Source of the DNA: Takakia lepidozioides
Taxonomy: Eukaryota > Plantae > Bryophyta
NCBI GenBank assembly: GCA_030704615.1
Contig: CM060732.1
Coordinates: forward strand, 50,158,001 to 50,222,000
Length of the DNA stretch: 64,000 nt
Direction of reading: 5' to 3'
Positions 3,301-62,284 of the stretch are shown one piece after another (position 1 is the stretch's first letter; each line of letters starts with the position of its first letter). The notes under the pieces are model-generated. The model was not told the DNA's origin, did not search any database, and saw only the letters and a program-made list of their open reading frames with translations. The position numbers were made by a program, and so were the translations under genes.

Positions 3301-6300
3301 TGAATAAAATGTATGCTAACCTCAAGATAAACAGTAGACGATTTGTACTACCATCACGAACAGACACCAAGCTAGACAACATTGATGACCCTTCACTAGC
3401 CTTGCACTGACAAAACAGTCAGAATAGAAGAGCAGCTATGCAACAACGATCCCAGGCAGTGTCAAATTCATACCTTCTCATTGTCAGCAAGAGAGTCAAC
3501 CGACATATAATTACTGTCGGCAATAAGACCCATTAGCTGGAATATATTGTTGAAGATGACACCAATGTTTTGCTTTTCATCGGCATAGTAGACATACAAC
3601 TTGCCGCTCAGCACACATGTCTTGGCATGCTCGACAGTACCCTCCCACATCTTATTTGACATTCCATTCCCCAAGATCTGCCACCACCCATCATAGATCA
3701 GCTCCCTCCCACTGACAACCCTCAGAGAATTACTCGAAGCTGGGAACTAAAAAGAAACCGGCATCTGAACAGTACTATTACTATGAGTATGTAGTCCAAA
3801 TCTTCCCCATGGAAGAGGCGTAAGATACATTGGAGTTACTATCTACTCACCACCTTGTGACAGGAGCTTTAGTCAGTTTTTAGGAAAGACCAATTACAAA
3901 ATTAATTTACTCACAATCTGTAACTTGAAAGTCACCATTAGAACACTTGTGGTTCATATGCTCAAACCACAATGCGACACTCCATGTAGCCATTTAAGAG
4001 GGCACATAGCATTAAAGATTAGCAATTAGGCCTATGTTTCCATTGACACAGTGATTCAAGATCCAGGTTGTAAACTGCTCACTGAACCTGATCAGGGACT
4101 ACTAAAAGATAAAGAGCCAATCGAGGAGGGTAACTAATGCCCACTTACATTGCGTAGTTTCTGTGGATCCATGACAACAAGGCGTAAGAAGTCCTCGACT
4201 GTCTGGATACTAGACTGGTTGAGACGCTTGTGGAAAGCACCATCCTTTCCAATCTTGTCCAAGCGCCACACCTCATCATTCAATGCTGGAGGATAATGCT
4301 TCTTGTATACTGTTTAGACCCAACAAAGTAATCATGGTCAATACAGGTCAGCTTACCATAAGGCTCGCAAATTGACAGGAGAAAATCCTCGTAGAATAGA
4401 ACTCAACTTCATACCTCCACCCTCTTTGTCTTTACGACCAGGTTGAACTTCGAGCTCTGAATGGTTATGTAGAGGTTCAGAGTGTAGGCAAAAGTAAGGC
4501 ACCTAGCTGGCTTGCCCATGTTTGTGCCTTCAATACCACACAGGCACCTCTTAGAGAGGAGTAAGAGGTGTTCCAGCCCATAAGGATATTGGGAGTTAAC
4601 AACAGACCACCACCAGCATGCTATGGTGGTCAGGAACTTGCACTTTCCTCATGATCCTCCTCCTCAAGACAATTCGACAGTAACCCAAAAACCATAGCCA
4701 AACTTCTAGAAGCCAATATCTGCTTTCCAAAAGTTTGTGGAATTTGCTATACACAGATGCAAAGAGAGAAGTTCAGCAAGAGAAATATACATTCGCCTCG
4801 GTGATCTTTCACAGTGAACGCCTCTGTCTTAGCTTCTCGAATTCGCAAGCCCTCGCAGTGGCCTGAAGAGATCTTCACCCCAAGCCGAAACTTCCGGCTC
4901 CGGATCCAGCTTGAATTATCAGTGAACGTCAACTCACCAAGCGTACCCACTCCTTCCTTCAATGTAACAGACAAGTCTCCTGTCAGGAGTGGTCTTTTCC
5001 CCTCACGCTCTCTAACCTCAGCATTCTCGAAGTCCTCTTGGGGCCAATTCTCCTCGTCATCAGCAGTGAAATCGCCCTCTAAAACCACGACTTCGAGCTT
5101 AGCAGATGATTCTGCACCTACAGTCACAACCTGGCCCGTAGCAGCATCCAGCAGCACTACATGAATGGCAGTTCCTTGCTCTCCCTCCACCTTGCTTCCA
5201 GTAAAAAGGGGGAGAGCCAACTTATTTCTAAATTGCAGCCGTAAAATTCGCTGGTCAGGGCCCTGTATCCTTTTAGGCGATGATCTACACATATCAGAAA
5301 CAGACATGATTAAGCTCTAGCACCAACTTTCTGAACATCAAATGTTGTTTCCAAGACAAACATAAACCATAGCCATACAAGCATGAAGAACATAATCCCT
5401 AATGGAGGGGTCAAACAATGTCTGAAGAATTTGGAGGTATACTTCTAATATAAACACATCTTGCAGAAATACTAGATACCCTGGAACATACCACAGTGTA
5501 TACTTTACAACTCATACTACAGAGACTCCTGGAGTTTCAGCCCACATTTGCTGCCAGTTAGATGTTGTGGATTTTTTTCAGAATTCAGAATGCACACAAT
5601 ATAGCTGAGAGTATTAAACATGATTAATGAAATTGGGTGTGAAAATGTGGGAAACTTTCATACCGAGATCCCACTTTAGGAGGGGCGAAATTGGCAAGTG
5701 CCCTTTCAACCTCTTCTCCCACCTGCAAAATAAAAAAGGATCAAGCCATCAGACATTGCCCGGCCCTGAGCAAGCCACAAAAGCTCCTCCAAATCCCGGC
5801 CTGGTCCCTATCTGGAGTTGAGGATACTACCAAATGGTGGTAAGTGGATCATGACATGGATGCAAGGAGCATCAGAACCATACCAAGACATAGTTGGATG
5901 GACAAAGGGGCATCCTGCTGCTAATCCCCACAAGAGTGCCAAAAAACACTCGGGATACTTCTACAAAGAGTAGAATCTTCCCTCAAAAGACACTTTACCA
6001 TTACCGAAATAAAAAAGATGTACAATACATGCAGCTCATTTCGGTATCAAAATTGCATGACCATGATATGGAAAGCAGTAGCACACCTATTCAGGGTTCT
6101 TGTGCTAAGGGACGATCATGCACAACAGATGAGTCCTCACCTACGAATGTACATGAAGGTAACCTGTTCATGGTAAACTTAAGCGGAAAACTCTCCTCAC
6201 ACTCTCCTCGCACCGGTACTATTCTGTAAGAACAAGATTTTAGAAAACATGAAGACAAATGGGGAGAAAAATAGAGGGCTTACCACTCTGCGAAGTAGTG

Positions 6301-19710: not shown

Positions 19711-22700
19711 TTATTTTTTTTGTTTTTTTTTAAAAAGGAGAGGGGACAGAGGCCTGCTGATCAAATTAATTGAAAAAAATAACCACCAAGGGAGGCCATG
19801 AGGCTTACTGAGGGGGAACATTCCCGCGACCATAGCTAACTTGCTAAAGGGAAGAAGATGGGGAAAGGGGTAGGAACAATGATTGAGAGAGGGGGAGAGA
19901 GTTATAAGTCTAAGCAATAGAGGGGAAGTAAAGCGAGGATCAACTGCAGAAAGCCATTGAAGGATCACGTAAGAAGATTCATAGAGGGCCATGCCCTAAG
20001 ATGACTGAGGAAAACAGGTCTTTTAAGCAGCTGACGGAGACGGAATTTGGAGAACCTGAACAAGGTGCAGATGGCGAGGGAGCATCTGAGGCTGCACTAC
20101 TAAAACTTAAGCTGTGTACGGAATTTGGGGTCTCGTGCACGTTTGTGGCGCCAGTTATAGTCTCCATCATCTCCCTCACTATGAGACTTCCCATTGAGGG
20201 GGGATGGAAAGTTGCCATGTAAATTTTAGTGTGGAAAACACCGGCACCAAGCATGCTGCCTTTGCCCCAGGAGTTCTCATGGGAAGTCTTGAAGCAATTC
20301 CTCCCCCTTGGACTGCTCCGAAGTTCTGGAAACAGGGTAAACACAGACAGTAGTAAACCAAGTCCTTATGCCCCTCAATGTCAATAGATCGTGGTATAGG
20401 TAAGTAATAAATAACACCGGATCTGCCCTCTTGGGAGGTTTCCCTCAAAAACCCAAGCACATCTTGTTGCCATAGATTCCACAGGGTAAGCGCTCTAAGA
20501 GCCACCCAAACCGGACAAAGAGTTTTTTTAAAAAAAACTTTGTCCTGGGAAGGGAACATTTAGAAGCAACAAAGAAGGCAGGGGGGGGGGGGAGGAGAAG
20601 GGGGAAGCTATTCCAGTGGGAAGTAGGAGGAAGAAGGCAAGAACTCTTTTCCAGACTCTAACTACCAGATTGCAAAATATGAGACAGTGCTCAATTGATT
20701 CCAAAATGGAGCCGCATAGAGAGCAGATAGATTAGGGTTATAGGTAGGGGTGGTTTCATGGGTGCGAAGTTTGACTGGTAGGATTCTATGAGTGAGCTTC
20801 CAGATGGAAACATGGAGGATCTTGTCCGGTCTATCTTTCCTCCAGATGTCTCTCCAGATTTGATCCCATTAACGTTGATCAAGCTGCAGACTGCCCCATT
20901 TCGAGCACCATTTGAAAGCAAAAGAATGGGGGGGTTGATGAGGGAGTGTCCCTTTTTCACCGAGTATGAGAAGAAAGGGGTTTTCTCTGTCCATTTTCCC
21001 ATCCCACTTCCCCGGGATCAAATTGCAGGTCAGCCAAAGAACATTTAAAAACCAGGTGAGGTTTTCTTGACGTGCCCATTGCGCCTCCATACCTTGGGGG
21101 GGCAGTGGGTATGAGTTACCCTGAATGTCAAGCACCCTGATGTGGAAGAGGGCAGTCATATCAGTTTCCATTCTTCCTTGATATTGAAGGAGCCCTTCAT
21201 CGTCTGCAGCAATTTATCCCAAAGCCTGATGCTTTTGGACCCTGGCAGGATGTGACCAACAAGACTGGAGCCTGAATTTGCTGGCTGGAGGCCACCCATG
21301 CCGGTGCCTTTATTATCTGAGCTGCACCTTGAAGTAAGGGCTCCATATACCTGGAAACAGTGGCCATAATGGTGTCCCAGGCTTTAGCTCTCTTGTGTGC
21401 GCCATAACAGTCACTTGAGCCCGAGATAGGGTTTCGTTTTGGGAGCGCATGTTGGCAATATGAATGAATCCTTGTTGTTCCCAAAAAAGCCATTGCGGGG
21501 TCTGAGAAAGCAGAGTAGCAGAATCCATATTGTAATTAGCAAAAACAGGATGTCTCAAACATTCTTGGTGGGTTTGAGGCATCCGTTGTGTGAGGTTTCC
21601 TCTCATGTAGTGCCAGGCCTTCCATATAGACTGCCATGGCTTGGAGCCCAATGTAACAGCCTTGTTTTTTCCCTTGAACTATCCATCTCAACGATTGAGC
21701 CCAAAGGGTGGAGGAAGCGGGCAACGAGCCCATGAGGTAAGGTTGAATGAGCTTGCTCCATGGTGTGATCCTATGTTTAATGGCTCTGGGAATCCCTTTT
21801 GCCAGCAGGGCCTTGATCTCCGCAGAGGGGTCGATAACACCTAATCCGCCCTTTTTCTTTTTTTGGCACAATTGGTCCCATGAAAGCAAGGCCCTTCTTG
21901 TTGGAGCTGCAGGTGTGGCTCCCCATATGAAATTGCGTATGAGGGCTTTAATCTCCCGGATCATGGCCTCCTCAGGGTCCCAGACTGCTGCAAAAAACCA
22001 CATAGATGCCTCCAAACCTGATTGGCCACCAAAGCCCTTCCCACAATAGAGAGCATCGCAGCACTCCAAAAAGCCAAGCTTTTCCTAAGCCTTGCAAGCA
22101 CCTCTTTGAGTCTGTCATGATTGGACATGTTCAGCCCTATTTGATGTCCCAGCAGCTTGTGAGTGTGACCCTCTTGAAGCCATTGCAGGCCTATATCCGT
22201 GCCCCATGCCTGGCAGTGAGCTGCCGTTGCCCCATTGTGAAGGAGGGACAAAATGCCCATAGATTTTTTCCAATTCATTTTGAGGCCAAAAGCCAGGCAA
22301 AATGTTTGGAGGACTTGAAATGTTTTGTCAATGTTTGATTTTGTGGAGTTGTCCAATAAGAGAGCAGTGTAATCCGCATACATGGAAAGTTTGAGCATCT
22401 CATGGGTTAGTGTGGGCAAGTGCAAGCCCACAATGTCGTGCCTGGAGTACATCATGTGCCCCAGGGAGTCGGCAGCAATGAGAAAGAGGAACGGTGCTAG
22501 AGGGCAGCCTTGTCGCACCGACCTAGAAATATGGAAGGGTTTGGAGATGACACCGTTCACCATGACCTTGCTGGATGCTGCATGTAACAAGATGTGAATC
22601 CAAGTCAGAAAAGGCCCCCCCAGCCCTGTTTTCTCCAATGCCCTTTCCAGGAAGTTCCAATCAATTGAATCAAAATCTTTTTCAAAGTCCAGCATCAAGA

Positions 22701-25190
22701 AGGCAATGGGCTGGCTGTTGATCTGAGCTCTGTAAAGGTCCTCATGAGCCAAGAGAATATTGTCCAAAATCATGCGGTCTTTGAGAAATCCAGTTTGTTC
22801 CTTCCTCATGATCTTTGGCAGAAGGGGCTGCAACCGTAAGGCCAGGGTCTTGGCGATTATCTTGTAAGTGGACTTCAGCAAAGTGATAGGCCGATAGTTG
22901 GCCATATCTTCTCTATCATCTTTCTTGAATATCAGAGTGATGAGGCCTTCAGCCATCTCTGAGGGCATGAGCTCTTTTTCCAAAATGTCGTTTGTCATAA
23001 GGAGGAAGTCCTCCCCAATTGTTGGCCACATGGCTTTGAACAGCTCATTGGGGAGACCATCAAGTCCCGGGGATTTCTGGGATGCCATGGAGTTGACTGC
23101 TTGACCTAACTCGTACACTTACAGGGGGGCTACCAAGTTTGATTTGTCCAATTGAGACAGAGAGCACGGAATATGCTGGAGCATAGAGGTTGTAGCATCA
23201 ATCTTTAGCTGTGATGGCTCTTGCCTTTGAAAAAGTCTTTGGAAGTACGAGGCAACAACTTCTGCCATGATTTTTGGCCTGTCCACCAAGTGCCCATTAG
23301 CATGGCGAAGGGCTGGAACCATTGTGGCTGCTCTCCTCTGTGCAGCTTTGACAAAAAAAAATTATTCATCTTTTCTCCTTTGAGACTCCAGTTGACCCCT
23401 GCCTTGATTCTGGAAAATTGCTCCTTGGCATGTAACAGAGTAGAGAGGTTCCTCTTGGCATCCTTGTAGGAGGATATAGTATGGGGTCCTTCATGTCCCG
23501 ACTGCAGCTGAAATTGGCAAACCTCTAGACACTTAGTAAGAGCTTTTTGTCTTCTAGAAAACTCTTCCACCTTCTCCCCAGAGATGTCTTTGCAAAGGTC
23601 TCTCAACATTTTGAGTTTTGCCAAGAATCTAGCAGTGGGGGAGACCAAGGGGGTGACTGCAGATTCCCAGGCCCTCTGAAGAGTCTGTATGATGTGAGGG
23701 TCTTGCAGCATGGTTGGGTTCAATTTGAAAAAACCCCTGCCTCTCACTCTGGATCCGGGAGTGTTACTCACCAGCTGCACAATAGCGTGGTCAAATTATG
23801 GAAGAATGGGCTGCAATGTACCTCTTGACCAAGCCTTAAGAGTAGATGAACAGTAGAATCTATCCAAACGAGCCTGGCACAACTGTGGAGGGTCTTTGTT
23901 GTTGGACCACGTAAATTTCAAGCCACCCTGGGCTGGAGTTGATGCGTCCAGCAACCCCACCAGCAGGCGCATAGCATCCCAGGAGTTTTTCTCATTCGTG
24001 GAAAGACCATGCGCCAATCTACCTAGTCTGTTCATGTCTCCCTCCACCATATTGAAGTCGTCACCCATGAGCCAATGTTGAATATGTGGATGCTGCAGCA
24101 TGTTCTCCCTGATTTGATTCCAGAGGCCTACCCTGTCTTCCTCTACATTTGGGGCATAGATGTTTAGAAAACCCACCTCCCTAGAGTTTGACCTAGGTTC
24201 AAGACAAGATGTTGCACTCTGCCTTGCAACCACACATCATGAGAGACAAAGGATTGTTGTAAGGATGGGGAGACGAGGATTGCGGTGCCCCCCCCCTTAG
24301 AATCTGTGATGGTGGGGTTCCAGAAGGCTGATGCAGCAGGCCACATGGAGGCTCCCAGAGAGCTTATTTTGTCTTGATTTAGTTTATGTTATAAGAAAGA
24401 CAATATTAGAGCACGTATCAGAGTAGAGGCCCATGTTATGATCCTGGCCCTTTTGGGGGCAGAGCGATCAGAGCCAAGGCCTCTGACATTCCAGAAGGTG
24501 AGGGATAGATTCATGTTGGGGTGACCGCAAGGCCCATGCTATCTGCGTGACTTGATGGCCACATTGGGTAAAAGAAGAACTTCAGACGCCTTGTCAGAGG
24601 GGTGGAGGGTGTTGAACCACTTACAACCTCGCGGAGGAGGAATCAGAATAGGATGCTGACAGGTGAACACATTTGTTGTCTTTTTACTTTTGCATTTACT
24701 TTTGAATGGCATACCTCCATCTTTATGAGCTGAGAATATGTCTGCAATGATGTGGCAGGAAAAGGTTTTGGAAAGAAGTAGGAGGGCTGAGGGGGAAGAG
24801 GGGTGGCCCAAGGGGTCCCACCAACCCGAGAGGATTTTCTGCGTGTGAGCATTGTCCAGCAGCAAAGTCCATACCCTCTTACAGTCTGAGAGGTTAGGCA
24901 CAAAGAATAGGAGGGGGGAGTAAGCATGAGACATGCTTACCGGCGGGGGTGAGTCGACTGTCTCTTCCGGCAGCAGAAAGTTGACCGAGTGATCAGCTGC
25001 AACATTTGAGGCGATGTTGAAATGGTTAGCATTTGCCAGCACCAGCTGTCTGTCGAGATTTGGCTGCTGTAGGGCTGCCCTGCTTCCGTGCGGGGATGTA
25101 GCAGCTCATAATGCTCATCCACCAGCTTGGATCCAATCTCCATAATTTTCCTGCATCAGGCCCACTCGTTGGGATCTTTGCCTCTACAAG
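19711..25190 (-). mobile_element. Degenerate L1-clade LINE retrotransposon (ORF1 remnant; ORF2 with APE endonuclease, RT and Cys/His motif; poly-A tail)
   Basis: ORF2 starts at 24514 (MNLSLTFWNVRGL). APE motifs: NIYAPN, GDDFN, FTWSN, ARLDRFY. RT motifs (21961-23118): KSPGLDG, NYRPITLL, LDFEKDFD, RSVRQGCPLAPFLF, YADY (YADD mutated). C-terminal EHCLIFC-like motif near 20680 and WVALRALTLWNLW. A-rich tail at 19711-19734. Many stops and frameshifts. Confidence 0.92.
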
Positions 25191-31625: not shown

Positions 31626-32294
31626 ATTTATTGTTTTCCACGAATTTATTGAGTAGTACTTATCCAATCATTATTGATATATCTGCTGTCGAGGCTCCAA
31701 TCATTGTCCAGGAAAACTCACTTTGGTATTTTTTGCAAATTTCCAATCACCAAAACTACTTGAAATTCAACATCTCCCACCACATGTCCAAAAATCATGA
31801 GACCAAGGCGGTGCACCCCTCCTCATTGAGGGCTTTCCAACGGTACCAAGCACCAAGGCTGGTCCGCGGTTTGGGACATCTTAATGCGACAAAACAAACA
31901 AACAAACAAATCATCTTGCTTCATACATTGATATCGAGCTTGCCGTAGGGCGGAGTGTGTGGCATGTGGATGGTGATGTAGCCACAAAGGTTTCAAGTTC
32001 CACTCACTGTATAATCATTGTCTCATTATGAGCCTTCCACAATCACTTTCCACAATCACTTTCCACAATCACTTTTGGCAGTTAGCCGCCAGCGTCAATA
32101 TTCGCTGACAACACCCCCAAGTGCCATGTGATATACGCACTTTAAGGATAGCTGATGGCCCCTCATGTCGTCGGGCATTCCTCGATTTAAGGTTAGAGCC
32201 ACAGGGACTGCCCATTTATGGAGGGCCACATGAGGCGTCCATCTAGACATTAACCATGTGCAAGCAGGTTCCGTGGTTGGTGCGGATTGTTACC

Positions 32295-32389: not shown

Positions 32390-34034
32390 TATTAGAAATT
32401 TTATACGCCAAAAATATTTTGAGTCCTCAACCCATGGAGGTAGTCCGAACTTCGCTTCTATATTAATGAGGTGGTGGCCCCCAACAACCGACCAGGCCAC
32501 AAAGTCAGAGCCCAGACAGCGAGAGAGAGACACACAGACAGACAGACACAGACACAACTCACTGTCCGAAAACCTCAGGATCAGCGGATTCATCGTAATT
32601 TCGTCACTCTCATCACACCGCCGCAAGGTAGTCTGTTCTTCCTGCATGATCAGCAAGTTGAGCTGCGTGTGTGGTGTGGTGCACAGAGGTGATGATGAAA
32701 TGTAGTATCGTGAAACTGGGCATGATTCTCCTTGAGGAAGAATTAGCAATAGAATGCAGGATTTGCAGTCTCCATGGAGGGAACAAGGTTTCATTGGAAT
32801 CTAGTGTCCGAAGTGGAAGAAGAACAGCGGCGGAATTGGGTTGATCGACAGTGCTCAGCGATGGAGGTGTGGAATGGAATGCCAGAATTGACGGAGGGAG
32901 GAGTGCATAAATATTTTGGGATGTTTTGGGCGCATCAAGAGTAGCCGAGGTAATTAGCTATGGACCTGTGTGCTTTCGCCCTTTTTGAAGCATCTCTTCA
33001 CTTTGCCTTCTCTGCATGTCTTTGGTTGGGAGTTACACTTGACCGCAAGTGCAGCGCCAACCGAGAACTTCAGTCTGCCTTTTCCTCTTGTTCACTCTAT
33101 GAGGAAATCGATGTGCTGTACATTTCGAATTTCCCAGCATGGCTTTGCCATTTCTGATTGTGGATTCTAGGTTGAGTTTCATCCCTAGGTGACAAGACGA
33201 TGCGTGAGCTTGACCTTAAGGTTCCATTACACAACCAGCAGAAGGAGGGACGAAATGACTGTAATTGTAGGGTTTGTTTGACACGTGAATTAACGAAAGT
33301 TTTGATGCCTTGGCAACATTCTCTGTGGCTGCTGCCTAGTAAATCTGCGCTCCTGAACTATGTCCTTGAGCTGCAGTTGCTTACACACATCAGCTAAGCT
33401 AGCTTTCATCTCCTATGTACTCGCTCGAGAGTGCCTTTGAAGTTCTCGGTCTTAGCTTGTTGTGTCTCCCAGTGGTAGACTGTGGTCAGCTGAGAGCTCC
33501 AGCCATATTATTTTAGAACAAAATCCCTCAAGCATAAATAGGGACATGAGAAGCCCGACACAAGTGTACCTTCTGTTCCTCTGATCTTTGGGCTGCCAGC
33601 GGAGGTTTTCTTTTCTCCCCAAGTTATTTCTGTATCTGACTCCTCTTGTAAAGTTAGGTGCGGGTCTCGAGTTTAGATTGTCATCAGTTGAGCGGCTGGA
33701 ACTATTAAATTTAAGTACACTTGTTGCAAGCTCCGCACATGATCTAAAGAGTTGCAGGTATATTAATTAGACGTTCTTGACCAGTAGATGCTTTCTATAC
33801 AAGTTTTGTCTTTATGATTCTTTAGCGCGCACGAGGTTTGCATAGTATCGAGCTATTTCCCATTACATAGACAGACCAATCACGACCCGAGAAAAGGAAA
33901 GATTCTCAAAATCAGCTCAAAGATTGTAGCCACCTTGAAGTTTTAAAGCTGCTTCCGAAGTTGGAAAGACCCTTGTTGATTCACCCATAAGGACCGATGA
34001 GGATGTGCAGGAGGTGATGGTGTAGCTGAGCAGA

Positions 34035-37000
34035 ATGCAAGATTTGGGTGTCAACATGATGCACGTATTCCAAGCGTTGGTGTGGGTGGTGTTGGTAGTC
34101 GTGGTGGAGAGATTAATATATACGTGGATAAGTACTAAGTGGGCAAGGACCACAACTAATCCAGAGCCCTCTCCAACTACACTGGAGTTGGAGGATCCCA
34201 GGTGAGAATCCCGTCAGATGATGCTATGCTACTGCAGCCAACATTGAACTGTTGGAGCCGTTTCGACAGTTTGAAATTGTACTGTCGCCTTGTTTGCATT
34301 GTTCGGTACTTGCAGATGCACGGACATGGGTGCCACAGTTGGCACTGATTCTATAAAGGAAGTCTAGGTGTTGTCTACAACATAGCAACAAGGATACATA
34401 TATTCCACCGTGCGGAGATATTATAGAAACTTGTATAAAGTATGAATGAGCTTGTATTTTCTTCAAATTTGAGGCTCGATATCTTGATATGCCGATCGTT
34501 AGAGGCCCGTAAGCATTACATCAAGCATCTCGAATGCTGTGCATGAGGCCAGTCTTTCGAGTACACACATTACATCATTAGAGAAATGGCAAGATAGCCC
34601 TGCTACCTTGGAGTACACATCAGGCACTGATGAGCTGAGTTTGTTAGGGAATGGCAGAAATTCACACTCCCCATGTTTTAGCAAGAGGTACAACAATTTA
34701 CAGTCCTTGATAAGGTCATGCCTATAACATTAACTCTCTCGAGGTATCCTGGTCGATCTCCTGGTATCTCAGGAATACCCACTTACGTACTGGCTTTCTT
34801 TGCTAGCCTGCGCAGCTTTCCAGAGCTCAATCCCAAGCACAACATTTTCTTGAGCCACAGTGGAGCTCAGAAGCGTTTCGTTGAGCAACTATGTAAGGAT
34901 TTGGAAGCGGGATGCCATTATCCTTTCTTTGACCAGCGGGATGACAGCTTGCCAAAAGGAAAGAAGTTTGCATCTCTCATTTTTGATGCCGCCAAGCAGT
35001 GCCGTGTAGCAGTGGTTGTTTTGTCAGAAAAGTACCTTACCTCTAAATGGCCTATGCAAGAATTAGCTGCATTTGTAAGTGCTAAGAAATCTGAAAACAA
35101 AAATCTGGACTTGTTGCCCCTTTTCTTTGAGTTGTCTAACTATGATCTCAGTGATCAATCAATCTCGAATCGGTGGATGGTAGAATGGACTAAGCTGGCC
35201 GAAAACGATCCTAGAGTGGACGTAGAGCAGTGGAAGAAAGCCATTCAAGAGCTTCGTGCTGCAAATGGCCTCATTTTTGCCAAATTTGGAAACTCGGAGG
35301 TGTCCTATAGGGAAGCTGTTGTGAAAGCCATTTTTAGGCTCGTGCCTCCAGACCTGCTGTACGATACTTCCGAAGTGGAGGGTTGCGACCGAATGTGCAA
35401 AGTAAGTTCAAGCTCTCAGGCAGATGTGCCTAGACATTTTAGAAATTCAAATATTTGATGTGGGAGCACTAGATTCTTACTAAGCACGAGGGGTGCTTGA
35501 TACCTTTGTTTTCACTTGCAGATTTTGTCAGGTATGTTTGTCGAAGACACGTCGAATGAGAGCGGTTTGCCACAAGCACAAAAGTTGGGCTTGTATGGGA
35601 TGGGCGGCCTAGGAAAGACAACAATGTGCAAAGTTCTATGCAATCACTTTCAGGCAGAATTTTGTGGATGGGTTTGCCATGTGGAGCTGGGAAGTGAATT
35701 CCCTCTCGTTCTGCAAAAGCACGTGTTAAGGAAGCTGCTACGACTAGGTGAGGATGTGCTGCAGAATATTACAGACATCTCCCAGGTAACATGTGATTTG
35801 CTTCACAAGTGAGTACGTATTGTAGGTCTGAGGGGTCAAGGCTCAAAAGCTGTCTGGGCAGACAATTATACTATCAATTGACGATCTATCTTAGACGTTT
35901 CCCTGGAGTACTTACTTGATTCAACTGTGAATAGTACAATTATAAGCTGTAGTGGTGCGTGTGCTCAATCGGCACAGTCGGTGTAGATCTCACTTGAGAC
36001 TAGATTGTGGAAGTGATATCTCTAGTGTGGCATATGTGTATATCTTCCAGTTTCTAAAACAGACCAATACTCGTTCGCGTTGGTTTTTCCACTGACTGCT
36101 GCAAGCCAGTAGTTTTGGTACCAGGTTCATTAATGTCTTTGTGCTTGATATTGCAAATTAGATATTCTAGCTGGAGTTTTGTACTCCCCACGGTCCATCG
36201 TGCCATCTATAAGAAAGCTTATGAATTCTCCTCATGACCTCCGAAAGGATCTCCCCTCAAGTGCTCATGATTAATTACTGCAGGGTCAGAAATGCTTAAG
36301 AGAAAACATGAGACGGCAGCCAGTGTTTCTGGTCATCGACAACGTTGGTGATGAAGAAGCTTGTCGATCTGAAGCACGTGCATATCTGGAGGCCGGATTC
36401 CACCCACGTAGCAAGATTATGGTTACATCTAGGAGTAGAGATGTTGTGAAGGCGTTGCTTTACGACCTGGAATTGTGTAAGCCAATACCAGATTTGACGA
36501 TGGACGAAGCGGCAGTCGTCTTCCTGCGTAAATCAGCACCACGAAAGAGATTCTCTTTACTTGAACACGAGGAAAAGAGAATTGTCAACATTTGTCTTGA
36601 GCAATGCCAATTCTCACCTGACGGGGATCCGTATGCAGACAAGAGGGATGGACAGTATCATCCCCTGGCGCTAGGAGCATTGGGAGTCTATTATCATGAC
36701 ATCGACAATTTTAACTTGTTGCTTTGGGAGGAACACCTCCAAGACTTTGACAAGGTCAAACTCTCTAGGGAGTGTCCACGCATTTTCCTTATTCTTGGAT
36801 TGCAGTTCAGCACTTTTGACAGAGTGAAGAAGCTTCTATTTCTGGATGTTGCTCTCTATGCACATGGTCGGGTCGGAGTGGAGCTAAGTTCGTTCCAGCA
36901 TTGGGTGGATTGGCTGGCAGCACTACATAAACAGACAGGACAAGTTGTGAAGCATAAGGTCAGCGAAACCCATGATCACTATTCCAGAGAACACATTGTG

Positions 37001-38289
37001 CGCACTTATGACACTGGCATTTGTCCAACATTCTGAAAGTCCATCTTCCTGTTGTATTCGGAATTGAGGTTTCTCTAGCAGATTCTAATGGCCGGGAACA
37101 AATGTGTGTGCAGTTGAATGATTTGCAGAGGAATGCCATGATCAACCTGGGAGATTCAGCAGTCACCACACACGACCTCTACAAGGAATATGCGGAGTGG
37201 TATGTTACAGAGGGTGGGGATGCAAAGGACTGGTGTGTTTACCGGAAACATGCTGAGTACTTACCACATGAACTGAGTAGCAGTCCTCCTGCAGGTGGCT
37301 GTTGGCCAGACTTGATGAGAATATCGATGGAAGGTTTGAAATGTGTCAAATTTCCACGGAGGAAAGTTCAAGAGTGGCGCAACATCATTGTTTTACAACT
37401 CCATTCTTGTTCCAGTTTGACAGATATCGATATACACGGACTCACTTGTCTGTGTCATTTGGAATTGGTAGACCTCAAGAATCTGGAGAGACTTGCTTTT
37501 TCAGCAAATTTAGACGATAACACCACCCCTCAATACCCGCTGGACCTACAGTTTGTGATTCTAGAGAACCTCAGAGCATTAAAGCATCTACCCAGGTTTA
37601 GTCCGTGTATCTCATTGAGGATGTTCATCATGAGGGAATGTCCGAGCTTGACAGCGCCCCCAAAACTCGAATCGTGTTCAAGTCTTGAAATCTTCTCAAT
37701 GGACTGGTATCCCGATCAAGTATGCGCACCGAACGTGAGCGGAATGACTTCGTTGCAAGATCTTTTCATCTGGAACAAGGGGCAAGGACGTGGCGGACGT
37801 GTTGAATTAGAGGGCCTCAGCTCTTTGATAAATTTGCATGAAAGACTATATCTGTTGTCTCTGCCTGTAGAGAGATTGTCAGGGCTGGAGAGGCTGACAA
37901 AACTTCGTGTCCTCAGCTTGGAGCACTGTCATCTTCTCACTGAGTTGCCAGACTTGATTGGCCTCACCCACCTTGAGCTGCTGATTCTCTCGTGGACGAA
38001 GGTGAAAGAGATTCGCGGGGTGGACAGCTTGTTGCAATTACGAACCCTTGATTGTAGATGGTGTCAGGAGTTGCTCTGGCTGCCAGATTTGCACCATCTG
38101 CCAAAACTGAGGTATCTGAACACACGAGGGTGCGCAAAAATGACGACTCGTCCCAGAGTGCCCAAGCACCCTTGTGTTCATGAAAAAGATGTGCTTGAAG
38201 GAGACTCTTCAGGTGCGAAAGATTTCTATGACACAGAAGGCTTGTCCGAAGGTCTTGATCTGATGTTTTCTTCCCAAGAAGCAAACTAG
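34035..38289 (+). CDS. TIR-NB-ARC-LRR immune receptor with a predicted N-terminal hydrophobic anchor exon (about 958 aa)
   Basis: Exons 34035-34201, 34807 (or 34816)-35401, 35522-35785, 36284-36958, 37114-38289, all GT-AG and phase-consistent. TIR: IFLSHSGAQK...FFDQRDDSL...VAVVVLSEKYLTSKWPMQEL. P-loop GMGGLGKTT; Walker B VFLVIDNV; SKIMVTSR; YHPLAL; FLDVA; THDL; about 10 LxxLxL repeats. The first exon is inferred and less certain than the rest. Confidence 0.88.
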
Positions 38290-39544
38290 AGTGAAATCAA
38301 GTGTGATGGCCTCAAATGCAAGTTGAAAGTCTCTGATTCCTTCTGGAGATTAGACAATCTTGTGACCTCTGGGCATCATGATAGAACAAGACTGAAGTGA
38401 TTCTCTGGACCGTGCAAGTTTTTCTTTTTTTCTTCAACGAAACAGTTTGTTAGTTTACCCTTTCATGCCATTGTACCCTTTCATCATACCTTTTGGGTTT
38501 TCTTGTCTTTCTCAAAACCTTTATTCTGTTTGTTTGATACTTTTTCTCTCTAGATTTGTTCACAATCTTTCCCTGCAACATTTATGTTTGCACAACCAAG
38601 GTCTATTGTCATGATCATAACATACATGTAAAGTGAACTAAAGTAATATTACAGCTTTCAATTTGTGTCAAAACTTGAATGTCATAAGAATAGCTGTCTT
38701 GGAGCAACAACAATGGTACTAGATAGAGATTCCCAAAAGAACTTTGCTACTACTATTTTGCTGTGCTCAGAAACAGGCTGCAGGTCATCAAGCTTCCGTA
38801 GTTCAAAATGTTGGAAGTTCTTCACAAAATCTACTAAACTGCACATTCTAAATGAGAGTTGTATATCTATCAAAGTGAGTGATGATTTTCAGCACTCTAG
38901 GTGTTGTAGGGACGATAGCAGTGTTTGCAGATCCAGGTCCATAAACCTACAATGGGAGTGGAACATGATGGAAGTATGATAAATCTATTCATGCTATCAA
39001 AACATCAGAGTATCCACAAAACAAAAACAGACATTAGAGTATCCATTTATTTCTAACGTGGATCTTTTTGCCGATCTGAGAGTTTTTGTAGTGTATCAGA
39101 ATCAAGCAAAACAGAGGCCGCACTTGGTTGCAATCATAAACTATGAAAACAAGGTATATCTCTGATCGAGATCTCTAAGAGTACTTTTGTCAAAACCCAT
39201 CAAAGAATGATACTAGTGAGGTAACTTCAAACTTAGGACTCTACTCTCTTATTGGGTTCTAACTAGGACAACAGGTCTGAAGATACTTTAAGAGCTCAGT
39301 CAGTTGTTTCAAACAATATGAACATACATCTGTTCTCAAACTTTCTACTCATAAGTGCAACTGTGGGCAATGAGATTAAAGTTGATAATCTGATTGCATA
39401 TTAGAGAATTCAAAGGATCTGTATATTCATACATTAAGCTAACTGCAGTGATTCAGTTAGTCCAAAAGAACAACTAATCCAATATGGCTGATGAGATAGC
39501 AGGAAAGATAGTATCACTGGAAAAAAAAAGAGGAAGAGTCCTGC

Positions 39545-40804
39545 ATGCAGGGAGACGACTCAGAGAGGTGGGAGGATGATGAATTCCAACAGTGGGAAGG
39601 TAAAGACTGCAGCGCTATAAGTAAAAGCACTACAGCCCCACTGAGATGGGAAGGTTTCCCACGGGATGTGATGAACCATGTGTTGGCCCTCCTTCCTTTT
39701 CCTACGATTTTTCAGCTTCGTTGTGTCTGCAAGTATTGGGATTCTCTAGTGGGCTGTCCTCGGTTTCTTCAGTCCCGAGCAGAGAGTTCTGGTTCATGGG
39801 GATCATATTTCCCTGTTGTCTACGTAACGCAATACCAAGGCAGGAGGTGGAGAAAATATGCTGCAACGTTTGCTTACGATGCTTCAGTGAATTTTTGGCA
39901 AAAGATGCCACCCCTTTCATTCATTCCCAAGTCACAAAACCTTGAATTCTTAGCGGGAGCTGGAGGTCGTCTTCTGTGTCATAATGAGCTCGATGATATC
40001 GATAACTCATTGATGGTTTGTAATCCTGTGACCAAGGCTTGGAGACAATTACCTCAGTGTCTAAACTCTGGTGGAGGATCTTATTCTAGAAGCACGATGA
40101 GACGTAGAACTTATGCGTTGGTTTTTGTAGTAGATGATCGAGTCAACAAAGCTTACAAGATAGTTTTAGCTGGATTTGGAAATGTGACCAACCTAGATTA
40201 CAGAATCACAAAGGTATATGATTCTAGGTCCGACTCTTGGATACAAACTGGCAAGCTTCCTCCAGACTTGGAACTCAAATACCGAACAGGAGCGTTGTGT
40301 GATGGGCTGCTTTATTGGTGGGCTCATGAATTTGATTATTCCAAGAGAAATTTTGTATGGGACATCCTTCTTGCGTATGATATAGAGCAAGGGGTATGGA
40401 CTGTTATTCCAAATACAGTACCTGTCAATTTTGGAAGGGACCGTTCTCTTTTGGGATTTGGGGAACGTCTGATGATGGTGACGAAATTTGGATCGGGCAA
40501 TTTTCGAAACCAGCAAGGAATCTTTGAACTGGAGCCAAAAACCCACATGTGGGTTCAAATTGCTCAAATGCCCGAGTCGTTTTTAGATCTTGACATCGGT
40601 GAGGTTGAGGGTTGCGCTTCATGTGGCAGTGCGCAAAACAAAATCTGCATGGTCACTAGAGTTGAAAGGATTAGTTCCATTAGTGACGAGGAAGGTAGTT
40701 GGACAGGGCGGTGGATGGTGATTTACGACAAATCTCAAGATGTATGGGAGTGTGTGCCATGTAAGTGCTTTTCGACAGGTGCATTAAGAGAGTCCCATTC
40801 ATAA
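39545..40804 (+). CDS. Intronless F-box / Kelch-like repeat protein (possibly frameshifted at both termini)
   Basis: F-box WEGFPRDVMNHVLALLPFPTIFQLRCVCKYW, followed by AYDASVNFWQKMP, LMVCNPVTKAWRQLP, YKIVLAG, VYDSRSDSW, LAYDIEQGVW, WVQIAQMP. The usual C-terminal FEPxL motif is out of frame. Confidence 0.85.
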   Translation: MQGDDSERWEDDEFQQWEGKDCSAISKSTTAPLRWEGFPRDVMNHVLALLPFPTIFQLRCVCKYWDSLVGCPRFLQSRAESSGSWGSYFPVVYVTQYQGRRWRKYAATFAYDASVNFWQKMPPLSFIPKSQNLEFLAGAGGRLLCHNELDDIDNSLMVCNPVTKAWRQLPQCLNSGGGSYSRSTMRRRTYALVFVVDDRVNKAYKIVLAGFGNVTNLDYRITKVYDSRSDSWIQTGKLPPDLELKYRTGALCDGLLYWWAHEFDYSKRNFVWDILLAYDIEQGVWTVIPNTVPVNFGRDRSLLGFGERLMMVTKFGSGNFRNQQGIFELEPKTHMWVQIAQMPESFLDLDIGEVEGCASCGSAQNKICMVTRVERISSISDEEGSWTGRWMVIYDKSQDVWECVPCKCFSTGALRESHS

Positions 40805-57389: not shown

Positions 57390-60300
57390 ATGGGGTCCCC
57401 GGCGTCGTCGTTGTCGATAACAGGCGGCCGATCGTTCAGAAACCTGGTGAAGGGAATTCAAAGCCCCCGGCCTGAGAAATCGAACTCTCCAACATCGACT
57501 GGCCATGCGCGGCGGACATCCAGTGGGAGGTATATTTCGCTCTCACGTGATGAGAGTGAGATGGGGGGGGAGGTGAACTCGGAGTTCCTCTACACGGTGC
57601 ACATTCCTGCCACTCCTGATCATCATACAATGTCGGCCACCCCGACGGTGCGGCCCATGGACCCTGGGATTGCTGTCAAAGCTGAGCAACAGTTTGTTTC
57701 CAGCACAATCTTTACAGGGGGGTTTAACAGCGCCACGCGTGGTCATGTCATGGAAAAGATGATGGAGACTGAAGCTACCCACCCGCAGCTTGCATGCGCC
57801 CGGGGCTTGACCTGTGCTGTTAATGGGTGTGACGGGAAAGCAATGAGGGATGAACGGGGTGCCGACATGATCCCGTGTGAATGCAGTTTCAAGATCTGTC
57901 GAGATTGCTACATTGATGCCCTCAATGGGTCTGGCAAGTGCCCAGGCTGCAAGGACGATTACAAATCCCCTGAAGAGAATAGCATGAACAGCGACGATGC
58001 CGACGCTCGGGCATTGCCTCCCCCAGGGAATGATTCCGCCAAGATGGAGCGTCGTTTGTCTCTCCTCAAGACTAACAATCCTGCCTTGCTGATGACTAAC
58101 CAGTTTTCTGATTTTGACCATGCTCGCTGGTTGTATGAAACCAAGGGAACCTATGGCTATGGCAACGCCGTGTGGCCGAAAGACGATGGCTATGCCGGGG
58201 GAAACAACTCAGGAATGGGTGCTCCTCCCAAGTTTAATGACAAGGCGAGGCGTCCTCTGTCCCGGAAATCGAACATCTCAGCTGGCATTCTTAGTCCCTA
58301 CAGGTAATAATGTTCCTGCCCTCTTCACCTCCCTCACTGTTACAGGAGCTCATGTTTGGTGAATGTCAGAAGTGAGGAAGCCTCTTGGATCATCTTTGCC
58401 TGCACCCACTATTCTGAGATTGGGGGCTCTCTCAGACTGAGATTTCTAGGCAATGAGAGGGAAATAAAAGGGGAGTCAAGAATGAACGGGCCTTCCAAGT
58501 TTACAGAGGTGTGGGCATTCTATTACCACTGGTTTCTATCACTAGTTCTGTTCTCTTGTGTTGATGAACAATCCCTATGCTTCCTCTGCAAAGCCGGAAG
58601 GTCTTGATTTTTTGAATACTTCTTCAAGATTGTTCCCTTCCCTGGATGGCTGTCTGCGTCTTCTCTGCATTTAATACCAAATTGTCGTTTGATTGCTTGA
58701 ACAGCTGAACGTCAAGCCAGCCTGATACTTTGCATTTTAAAATTGTCCCTTTTTGCTTATATCCATCTCATTAGAGGTTTGACATGGGATGCTGAAGGAA
58801 TGTCTGACAGGACTAGAGTGCCTCTGTTGTGTTTTGTTGACAGAAAATAAGTCTGCAGGGATAGTTGCCTCCTTGAACTTGGTGATACTGAATCCGAGAA
58901 TGTGACATTGATGAGTCAAATGCTTTCCGAGACACAAGCTAGCATTTGTGCATGGCAGTGGGGTTCAAAGACTTTGGTAGCAACTCTACAGTTTTGTCTA
59001 GATGATGGGTTATTCTTGAAATGCACCTTTCTTTCCTTTCTTATCAAACATGATATACATCCCTGGAATGGAAAGGACCATTTGCACGATGTCTTACTGT
59101 AAGTTGTGGATCTCACAATCACATTTTTGGTTGTCAGAGGAGGATCTTTCTTGAGTATGTTTGCAATCTTCTTCGACTCAAGGAAGAGATATCAAAAAAA
59201 TATGGGTCAACTGATGGAGTGTTTGAAACACTGATTGTATGCAGGTTGCTTGTAGTACTTCGCATGGTTGTTTTGGGGTTGTTCCTCGCATGGCGTGTGA
59301 GACACCCCAACAAGGATGCAGTCTGGCTGTGGGGGATGTCTGTTGTCTGTGAAATATGGTTTGCCTTTTCCTGGGTCCTTGACCAACTGCCTAAGCTGTG
59401 CCCTGTAAACCGTACCACTGACCTCCAAGTGCTGAAGGAAAAATTTGAAAGCCCCAGCCCTCAGAATCCTACTGGAAGGTCTGATTTGCCAGGGGTTGAT
59501 GTGTTCGTCTCAACAGCAGACCCTGAGAAAGAGCCCCCCTTGACAACGGCCAATACGCTCCTCTCTATCCTTGCCGCTGATTATCCTCTTGAGAAGCTCT
59601 CTTGCTATCTATCAGATGATGGTGGGGCCCTCCTCACATTTGAGGCCACAGCTGAGGCAGCAAGTTTTGCTCGAGTGTGGGTGCCTTTCTGCCGCAAGCA
59701 CAATATTGAGCCTCGGAATCCTGAAACATACTTCCTGCTGAAGGGGGATCCCACCAAGAACAAAGTGCGCCCTGATTTTGTTAGGGATCGCCGCCGAGTG
59801 AAGCGAGAGTATGATGAGTTCAAGGTACGGATCAATGGACTGCCTGAGGCTATCCGCCGCCGCTCAGATGCCTACAATGCCCACGAGGAAATTCGTGCTA
59901 AACGTTTACAAATTCAGACTGGCGATACTGGAGAGTCCCTCAATGTGGCTAAAGCCACTTGGATGGCTGATGGGACCCACTGGCCTGGTACTTGGACTGA
60001 ATCTGGGAAGGAGCATGGGCGTGGAGACCATGCAGGCATCATCCAGGTATAACCACACCTCTGGTCTCCGAGGGCAGGGGTAATTTGTATGTGCATGTGT
60101 CTCTATCCCTCCACATTGATCTCTTGGGCAGTAGTGTGTTGTTTCAGGGACACTACCGTAGGGTAAGAGCACGGTAATTCCCAGGTGTTATTCTTGCAGT
60201 TTGTGGTTTCCCAATTGCCATTGTTTTATGTTCACTCTTGCACATCTGATGCATGGGATGCCTGCCTCGGAAAACACAGGTGATGCTGGCCCCTCCCACT

Positions 60301-62284
60301 GCTGACCCTTTGATGGGCAGCCCTGATGAAGAGAACCTGATCGACACCACTGACATTGACATCCGCTTGCCTATGTTAGTCTATGTATCACGTGAGAAGC
60401 GACCAGGCTATGACCACAACAAGAAGGCTGGAGCCATGAATGCTCTTGTTCGCACAAGTGCAATCATGTCCAATGGACCCTTTATTCTCAATCTTGACTG
60501 TGACCACTACATATACAACTCACTTGCATTTCGTGAGGCAATGTGCTTTTTCATGGACAGAGGGGGAGATCGCATCGGTTATGTCCAGTTTCCCCAGCGG
60601 TTCGAAGGTGTCGATCCCAATGATCGGTATGCAAATCACAACACTGTCTTTTTTGACGTGAATATGAGAGCCCTGGACGGGCTGCAGGGCCCTGTCTATG
60701 TGGGTACTGGATGTGTGTTCCGGAGGATTGCCTTTTACGGGTTTGATCCTCCAAGGCATAAAGTTCATAGTGGGTGCTGGGAAACCCTCTGCTGTGAAAG
60801 AAACAGGAAGAAGAAAGCCCAAAGGAAAGAAGTGGAGGTGACATCTATGAATGCAGGAACGAGTGATGATGAAGATGATGTGGAAGCTATGATGCTACCC
60901 AAGCGCTACGGCAATTCCATGAGCTTCGTAGAATCGATTCCAGTAGCGCAGTTCCAGGGGCGTCCACTTGCAGACCAAGGGGTTCTTAATGCCCGGCCAG
61001 CAGGTGCACTGACGGCACCGCGGGATCCACTAGACGCGAGCACAGTCGCGGAGGCGATCAATGTGATTTCTTGCTACTATGAGGATAAAACAGAGTGGGG
61101 CGGGCGGGTGGGGTGGATTTATGGTTCTGTAACTGAGGATGTGGTGACCGGGTATAGGATGCACAATCGTGGTTGGCGATCCATCTACTGTGTGACCAAG
61201 CGTGATGCATTCCGCGGGACTGCCCCAATTAATCTTACTGATCGACTGCATCAGGTGAGCATGTTATGCTTGAAATATTCTAATATGTCATCCTACTTCG
61301 CAGGTCAAAACAAAGTGCAAGCTGTCAATAGTCATTACAAGATAAGAGGCAACACCAGGACAAGCTGACATCCTCATATTGCACCATTGCTGAAGATTGT
61401 AAATCAGCTATCATTTCGGAACAATTTGTTGTGGCAATCATTTTGCTTTCCTGGCCCAAAAGTCTAGAATTTATAATCTAACTGCCCACTGTACCATGTT
61501 TCAGGTGTTACGGTGGGCAACAGGGTCTGTCGAGATCTTCTTCTCACGCAACAATGCACTGTTTGCAAGTTCGCGCATGAAATTTCTGCAGCGGATTGCT
61601 TACCTCAATGTTGGCATCTACCCTTTCACATCCATCTTCCTTCTTGTCTACTGTTTCCTCCCAGCCCTATCTCTCTTCACGGGCGACTTCATTGTCGAGA
61701 ATCTTAACCTGTCCTTCTTGGTGTACCTCCTTACTATTACTGTTACTCTCTGCATGCTTGCACTCCTTGAGGTCAAGTGGTCAGGCATCACACTTGAAGA
61801 GTGGTGGCGGAATGAACAGTTTTGGGTCATTGGTGGCACAAGTGCCCATCTAGCGGCAGTGTTTCAGGGCCTACTGAAAGTTGTGGCGGGGGTCGACATT
61901 TCCTTTACCCTCACTTCAAAGTCAGGGACGGAGGAGGAAGGTGCTGAGTTTGCTGACCTCTACATTGTGAAGTGGTCTTTTCTAATGATACCTCCCATCA
62001 CCATCATGCTCATCAACCTCATAGCCATAGCAGTTGGTGTCTCACGCACCATATACAGTGAGATTCCCCAATGGAGCAAGCTCCTGGGTGGGGTGTTTTT
62101 CAGTCTCTGGGTATTATGCCATCTTTACCCATTTGCAAAGGGTCTTATGGGCAAGCGCGGTCGCACACCAACGATTGTTTATGTGTGGTCAGGCTTACTG
62201 GCTGTCATCATCTCTCTTTTGTGGGTCTACGTCAACCCTTCATCACAAAGTACTGTTACAGGTGGTGGATTTCAGTTCCCGTAG
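57390..62284 (+). CDS. CSLD: Cellulose synthase-like D glycosyltransferase (GT2), 4 exons
   Basis: Exons 57390-58303, 59245-60046, 60280-61254, 61505-62284. CSLD N-terminus ([30 protein letters not shown]) and RING-type CxxC region. Catalytic motifs [27 protein letters not shown], followed by C-terminal TM helices ending GGGFQFP. Confidence 0.96.

Follow-up and report, generated by a model that had tools for sequence, protein, structure and literature searches.

TIR-NB-ARC-LRR receptors (TNLs) with an N-terminal signal anchor are known in flax (L6 and M) and in Arabidopsis (RPP1-WsA). The N-termini of L6 and M are described as uncleaved signal anchors that set localisation to the Golgi or the tonoplast, and this part of the protein is needed for L6 accumulation and stability (PMC3801107). 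Mosses have a greatly enlarged complement of TNLs, and EDS1 is reported to be missing from seed-free plants (PMC11218826). The same work found that moss TIRs trigger cell death in Nicotiana that depends on the catalytic Glu (PMC11218826). Here we describe a TNL gene at positions 34035-38289 of a 64,000-nucleotide stretch of the Takakia lepidozioides genome (contig CM060732.1, forward-strand positions 50,158,001 to 50,222,000; the whole stretch is called the window below). Its start codon lies in an exon that encodes a strongly hydrophobic N-terminal segment, joined to the TIR in spliced transcripts. We consider it plausible that this segment is an uncleaved reverse signal anchor by which the receptor is held on the cytosolic side of an endomembrane, a reading to which we give about as much credence as doubt.

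The window shows an ATG at 34035, preceded in the same frame by a TAG at 34023, and a donor CCCAG/GTGAGA at 34201/34202. The gene has five coding exons, which lie on the plus strand like all features given here unless marked otherwise: the coding part of the start-codon exon (34035-34201, or 55 2/3 codons), the TIR exon (34816-35401), two NB-ARC exons (35522-35785 and 36284-36958) and a last exon (37114-38289) that ends with the stop codon TAG at 38287-38289. When joined, they form a frame that is open over 955 codons. Contigs from two sequencing runs, belonging to two studies, are spliced from 34201 to 34816, from 35401 to 35522, from 35785 to 36284 and from 36958 to 37114, always between GT and AG. 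The first of these joints, across the 614-nucleotide phase-2 intron 1 (34202-34815, acceptor at 34814-34815), is present in one contig of each run. Of the words sampled from 33800-38500, 55-65% occur in the two runs, which come from one organism; transcripts without introns should contain roughly that proportion. Exon contigs reach a depth of 55-69, which is what spliced RNA gives, and intron fragments a depth of only about 4; from these intron-less contigs we judge both runs to be RNA. Contigs of this low depth (about 4) occur in run X1 at 34415-34566, within intron 1, and at 36049-36232, within intron 3; they could stem from pre-mRNA not yet spliced, from retained introns or from DNA traces. 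At the other end of the gene, the 3' untranslated region (UTR) extends past 38500.

A preliminary description of this stretch, made from its letters alone, had proposed the start-codon exon as a hidden first exon whose phase-2 splice leads into the TIR through either of two tandem acceptors (34807 and 34816), within a five-exon open reading frame (ORF) of about 958 amino acids. The exon is indeed transcribed and joined in phase 2 to the TIR exon, and every coding junction is borne out by the contigs. Acceptor 34816 is the one used in both runs, so the frame counts 955 codons; the frame through 34807 is open as well, with 958 codons, but that acceptor appears in no contig of either run, although contigs drop rare variants and a minor use of it may occur. 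The exon is not the first of the gene, since a non-coding leader exon precedes it and is spliced to 34011, which brings the count to at least six exons.

The rest of the protein is that of a regular TNL. Pfam scans and homology searches were run exon by exon, and the NB-ARC motifs were matched on the exons joined with X at the joints. The TIR exon matches TIR_2 (E=7.7e-19, 68.8 bits) and TIR (2.8e-16, 60.2 bits), both above the cut-offs. It also aligns with TIRs of known structure, namely those of RPP1 (5teb, 1.1e-11) and L6 (7vu8 and 3ozi, E of about 1e-9 to 1e-10). In these alignments the Glu of WPMQEL faces the Glu of WCLDEL in RPP1 and of WCLMEL in L6, so that the putative catalytic residue pointed out in the preliminary description is retained; its codon, GAA at 35060-35062, encodes residue 138 of the 955-residue model. 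NB-ARC is matched on two consecutive exons, with E=1.5e-4 (21.6 bits) on the P-loop exon and E=2e-3 (17.8 bits) on the following one, neither of which reaches the cut-off of 23.5 bits by itself, as the domain is interrupted by an intron. The expected motifs are present: the P-loop GMGGLGKTT on the first NB-ARC exon, Walker B FLVIDNV, RNBS-B IMVTSR and a GLPL-like HPLAL on the second, and THD, a version of MHD, on the last exon. This last exon also carries the LRR region, with a LRR_EndoS match of 42.9 bits and weaker matches to LRR_4, LRR_R13L1-DRL21 and LRR_14. The locus is therefore an intact, transcribed TIR-NB-ARC-LRR gene of 955 codons, and its host, on which the preliminary description had made its interpretation conditional, is a moss; the nearest named relatives of the TIR exon come from two other mosses, Ceratodon purpureus and Physcomitrium patens.

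Two details of these domains deserve mention in their own right. Walker B (36320-36340) reads Asp-Asn in place of the usual Asp-Asp. The closest named relative, from Ceratodon, has the same variant together with HPLAL, which makes these features typical of the clade and not signs of decay; a clade-wide Asp-Asn in Walker B may alter nucleotide hydrolysis. Furthermore, the window and the two runs differ at four coding positions, all in the last exon and all non-synonymous (37518, D>E; 37944, E>D; 38144, T>M; 38225, F>C), and no synonymous difference was seen. This pattern is suggestive of diversifying LRRs, although four differences are too small a number for a test.

That the hydrophobic segment belongs to the protein follows from the distribution of start codons. 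In-frame ATGs occur before the TIR core only at 34035, 34056 and 34059, all of them 5' of the hydrophobic core, and the next in-frame Met sits inside the TIR, in WPMQEL. A complete TIR thus cannot be made without the segment. In the other direction, the main frame is stopped inside the exon by the TAG at 34023, and no upstream ATG can lengthen the protein. That a complete TIR requires the hydrophobic segment speaks more strongly than anything else for a coding exon, as opposed to a UTR.

The core of the segment, VFQALVWVVLVVVV, spans codons 11-24 (34065-34106, 14 residues) and is encoded by G/T-rich simple DNA; it closes an uncharged run of 21 residues (residues 4-24). Its 14-residue Kyte-Doolittle mean of 2.96 is reached by one of the 329 ATG-initiated ORFs in the window, an exceptional value that confirms the strongly hydrophobic stretch announced, with its Thr/Pro linker, in the preliminary description. 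Over 19 residues the mean comes to 2.25, whereas among 26 hydrophilic relatives no N-terminus exceeds 0.82. The classical membrane threshold for this window size is 1.6, and the segment passes it. A crude Hessa-scale sum, which is position-independent and approximate, gives -1.1 kcal/mol for the 14-residue core. A single-sequence AlphaFold model predicts one helix over residues 2-41, with a per-residue confidence (pLDDT) of 82-95 for residues 1-30, followed by a disordered Thr/Pro/Glu tail.

The charges around the core are informative as to topology. The N-terminal flank has a net charge of -1 and the C-terminal flank (ERLIYTWISTKWART) a net charge of +2. Under the positive-inside rule, a basic flank stays in the cytosol, which favours an N-out, C-in orientation; no other topology would suit a cytosolic nucleotide-binding leucine-rich-repeat receptor (NLR), and the TIR would remain in the cytosol. 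From these elements, we propose that the start-codon exon adds a helix of about 40 residues, the first half of it strongly hydrophobic, followed by a Thr/Pro/Glu-rich linker leading to the TIR. With its uncharged to acidic N-flank and basic C-flank, the hydrophobic half would act as a type III (N-out/C-in) signal anchor. The receptor would then be tethered at a membrane of the endoplasmic reticulum/Golgi type, with TIR, NB-ARC and LRR exposed to the cytosol, in a manner analogous to flax L6 and M.

How old is this putative anchor? In an exhaustive search without length limit, the pre-TIR extensions of 34 longer relatives measured 8-171 residues, and all but one were hydrophilic. The sole exception is the Ceratodon purpureus protein KAG0556582.1 (P0127 in our set), which has a membrane-like N-terminal helix but belongs to a different clade. 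With one case in 34, a hydrophobic N-terminus ahead of TIR and NB-ARC is not a shared feature of the family. An earlier protein search with the TIR exon had mostly yielded prokaryote-style ORF calls on genomic contigs, whose apparent N-termini read through an intron and end at the acceptor; these were discarded, among them the hydrophobic-looking P0005, P0119 and P0131. In the TIR tree, the window gene groups with L001, a locus from an ENA assembly, and with P0004 (support 96/90), inside a clade of 11 rows (99/96). This clade excludes the anchored Ceratodon gene, so that at least two changes are needed on the tree to account for the trait.

The closest relative, L001, is 73% identical in the TIR, 63% in the second NB-ARC exon and 58% in the LRR exon. 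Its predicted first exon (5729-5781 of that locus) lies about 300 nucleotides upstream of the TIR exon, encodes MDPERLPSNAAEDEDDR and ends with CGCAG/GTGAGAT in phase 2. An alignment pairs it, together with the first part of its intron, with the 3' end of the start-codon exon of the window gene and the beginning of intron 1, and all through the family a phase-2 intron is kept downstream of the first coding exon. We therefore take the hydrophobic segment for a probably recent addition in this lineage, by which a short acidic first exon was lengthened at its 5' end with G/T-rich simple DNA; the putative anchor would have been gained in this way. In the related ENA assembly, the TNL homologues at L002 (9702-12759) and L003 (7545-9247) are arranged differently, as each forms a tandem pair with a second TIR-NB-ARC-LRR gene that follows it head-to-tail.

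Several observations weigh against a dedicated anchor. The fully hydrophobic core is just 14 residues long, has a Gln inside and is directly followed by Glu-Arg. When the crude Hessa-scale sum is extended to windows of 17-21 residues, it rises to between +0.7 and +2.7 kcal/mol, because these windows take in His, Gln and Glu-Arg residues. The order of hydrophobic N-terminus, TIR, NB-ARC and LRR stands as first described; membrane insertion of the helix is borderline on this crude sum. Comparison with relatives points the same way. The first exon predicted for L001 encodes only a 17-residue acidic peptide; the hydrophobic part has no counterpart there, and an in-frame TGA lies 21 nucleotides upstream of the L001 ATG. 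The first exon predicted for L002 encodes 134 residues that are hydrophilic, as is the 53-residue N-terminus of the P0155 fragment (69% identical), and the other members of the 11-row clade with readable N-termini are all hydrophilic. Upstream of the TIR exons of L001-L003 we found no comparable ATG-started hydrophobic ORF with a usable donor. Nor did a tblastn search with the exon peptide find anything beyond chance in the window or in the 4-6 kb upstream of these TIR exons. A word-based protein search with the 56-residue exon ORF returned no homologue, a weak blank as it covered proteins of 30-96 residues that share exact words. Without a counterpart in the nearest relatives, the segment offers no evidence of purifying selection, and the case for the anchor as a conserved family feature is weakened on these comparisons.

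Is the hydrophobic segment, then, selected for anchoring at all? The best competing explanation, which we hold to be possible but clearly less probable than a signal anchor, is that the segment is translated yet young and unselected. A G/T-rich former 5' UTR would have come into frame with an upstream ATG and yielded a Val/Leu-rich by-product; the receptor would have no dedicated anchoring and would behave like its soluble relatives or be somewhat destabilised. Codons 14-24 are nearly all GTN, TTG or TGG and a weak 9-nucleotide tandem repeat spans 34078-34096, so that repeat expansion could have produced the stretch by chance. The alignment of L001 with no more than the 3' end of the exon, the short acidic peptide with which that gene starts, the hydrophilic N-termini in the rest of the clade and the lack of a homologue in searches of limited reach all fit this explanation. 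However, an uncharged run of 21 residues with a Kyte-Doolittle mean of 2.25 is very likely to engage the signal recognition particle or membranes whether selected or not, and the flanking charges give the one topology that fits a cytosolic NLR. The gene is also expressed in two studies with its frame intact, and a hydrophobic N-terminus is found independently in a second moss TNL, P0127. Even as a by-product, the segment would probably stick to membranes, without being an adapted membrane 'address'.

A second alternative concerns translation. Contigs of both runs extend 5' of about 34009, by at least 257 and at least 401 bases respectively. The 20-base end of this extra text has a single match in the window; it covers 32928-32947 and abuts a GAG/GTAATT donor (32949/32950). 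This places the start of the start-codon exon at 34011, after tgtgcAG, with a non-coding leader exon (32549-32949) and a GT..AG leader intron of 1061 nucleotides (32950-34010) upstream; the intron is deduced from the loose contig ends and from the sequences at its donor and acceptor. The leader exon has a firm 3' end. Its 5' end is placed at 32549 at the latest, on the assumption that the 401 extra bases of the contig are collinear with the genome. Given such collinearity, the 5' UTR measures at least 425 nucleotides and holds 12 upstream ATGs (uATGs), 11 of them in the leader exon. The upstream ORFs (uORFs) reach 56 codons. One of them, ATG GTG TAG at 34017-34025, counts two codons, shares the reading frame of the main ATG and stops 9 nucleotides short of it. 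Could this leader of some 12 uATGs block the main ATG, so that the exon is effectively untranslated and the locus poorly translated or decaying? We think this improbable. All uORFs end before the main ATG, which leaves room for reinitiation or leaky scanning, and the 955-codon frame is intact along with all motifs. Moreover, the length of the leader and its uATG count depend on a collinearity that is assumed beyond 30 bases. Leaders rich in uORFs are a known means of restraining gene expression, and the present one may act as a translational brake on an NLR; under the signal-anchor reading, too, it would probably hold translation low.

Some further features of the leader region were recorded. 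At position 32923 the loose-end text of both runs has a T where the window has a G (GGGATGT becomes GGGATTT or GGGTTTT), so that the uATG at 32921 is lost in those accessions. A (GA)n/(CAGA)n tract at 32515-32560 lies at the minimum 5' end of the leader, and three tandem copies of CACAATCACTTTC are found at 32039-32077, about 500 nucleotides upstream of its presumed start.

Lastly, the segment could be a signal peptide that is cleaved off, or else a type II anchor, either of which would deliver the TIR-NB-ARC-LRR body into the secretory lumen. This appears very unlikely. The 14-residue core does have the length of a signal-peptide h-region, but both alternatives call for charges opposite to those found (n-region -1, C-flank +2), the residues right after the core contain no small-residue cleavage motif, and a luminal NLR would be deprived of cytosolic NAD+ and nucleotide and is, to our knowledge, without precedent.

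The signal-anchor reading can be placed in a wider, more speculative frame. Some moss relatives, from Ceratodon purpureus and others, start with myristoylation-like MG...S/T(6) sequences: MGNVMT in P0123/P0261, MGITLSRKRR, with a basic cluster, in P0141, and MGPGGT in P0134. From their sequences, these look like N-myristoylation motifs, an alternative membrane address carried by the same variable first exon. It is conceivable, though we would not consider it likely, that the first coding exon of moss TNLs, ahead of the conserved phase-2 intron, is an interchangeable 'address' module holding an acidic repeat spacer, a myristoylation-like start or a hydrophobic helix, and that membrane-tethered TIR receptors arose repeatedly and independently in bryophytes, among plants for which an absence of EDS1 is reported. 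If so, membrane-proximal TIR NADase signalling would be an ancient and recurrent solution and not an oddity of angiosperms.

As regards its surroundings, the gene is a singleton, no second TNL having been found in the 64-kb window. A F-box/Kelch-type beta-propeller gene (39545-40804) lies 1.3 kb downstream, a RING-plus-cellulose-synthase (CesA) gene of several exons is found at 57390-62284, and a retroelement reverse-transcriptase ORF occupies 21961-23118 on the minus strand.

An expressed moss TNL with an obligatorily translated hydrophobic helix provides a construct for testing membrane tethering of TIR receptors outside angiosperms, and its role in stability and signalling. Nature supplies controls in the anchor-less closest relative, L001, and in the independently anchored Ceratodon TNL KAG0556582.1. 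The gain is modest, as the architecture is known from flax L6 and M and was already present, unremarked, in the public Ceratodon annotation. Added interest comes from the apparently independent and recent origin of the putative anchor, the existence of an anchor-less near-relative and a second independent case in mosses. In the literature we found no published description of membrane-anchored bryophyte TNLs, the nearest being algal NLR-like proteins with predicted transmembrane segments (PMC7145615).

Among moss proteins, the closest named full-length relative is Ceratodon KC19_5G034700 (KAG0575840.1, P0121), with a TIR that is 61-62% identical. It has Walker B FLVIDNV, HPLAL and (I/T)HDLYKE in common with the window gene. 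Unlike the latter, it carries a hydrophilic N-terminal extension of 50-106 residues (14-residue Kyte-Doolittle mean 0.34) and no hydrophobic helix. The anchored Ceratodon gene KC19_11G064700, which encodes P0127 (1317 residues, annotated TIR-NB-ARC-LRR), has the same layout as the window gene. Its protein begins with an uncharged N-terminal helix of 23 residues followed by Lys, with a 19-residue Kyte-Doolittle mean of 1.94, and this helix is encoded by a 140-nucleotide first coding exon of its own (1501-1640 of locus L004, from Ceratodon purpureus CM026432.1), in phase 2, before the TIR exon. However, its TIR is only about 54% identical to that of the window gene and falls outside the well-supported clade, and the N-terminal peptides of the two proteins have no recognisable similarity.

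Like flax L6 and M, the window gene combines a short hydrophobic N-terminal segment, a polar or acidic linker and a TIR-NB-ARC-LRR body, with a homologous TIR in which the Glu is aligned. It differs in that its host is a moss and not an angiosperm, and in that its anchor is predicted from sequence. The lack of an anchor in the nearest moss relatives argues for a gain independent of L6, M and RPP1-WsA, so that the anchor seems L6-like but separately acquired. Downstream signalling must also differ from that of L6 and M, given that seed-free plants are reported to lack EDS1; for this gene, EDS1-independent signalling would be expected by analogy with the literature on seed-free plants (PMC11218826).

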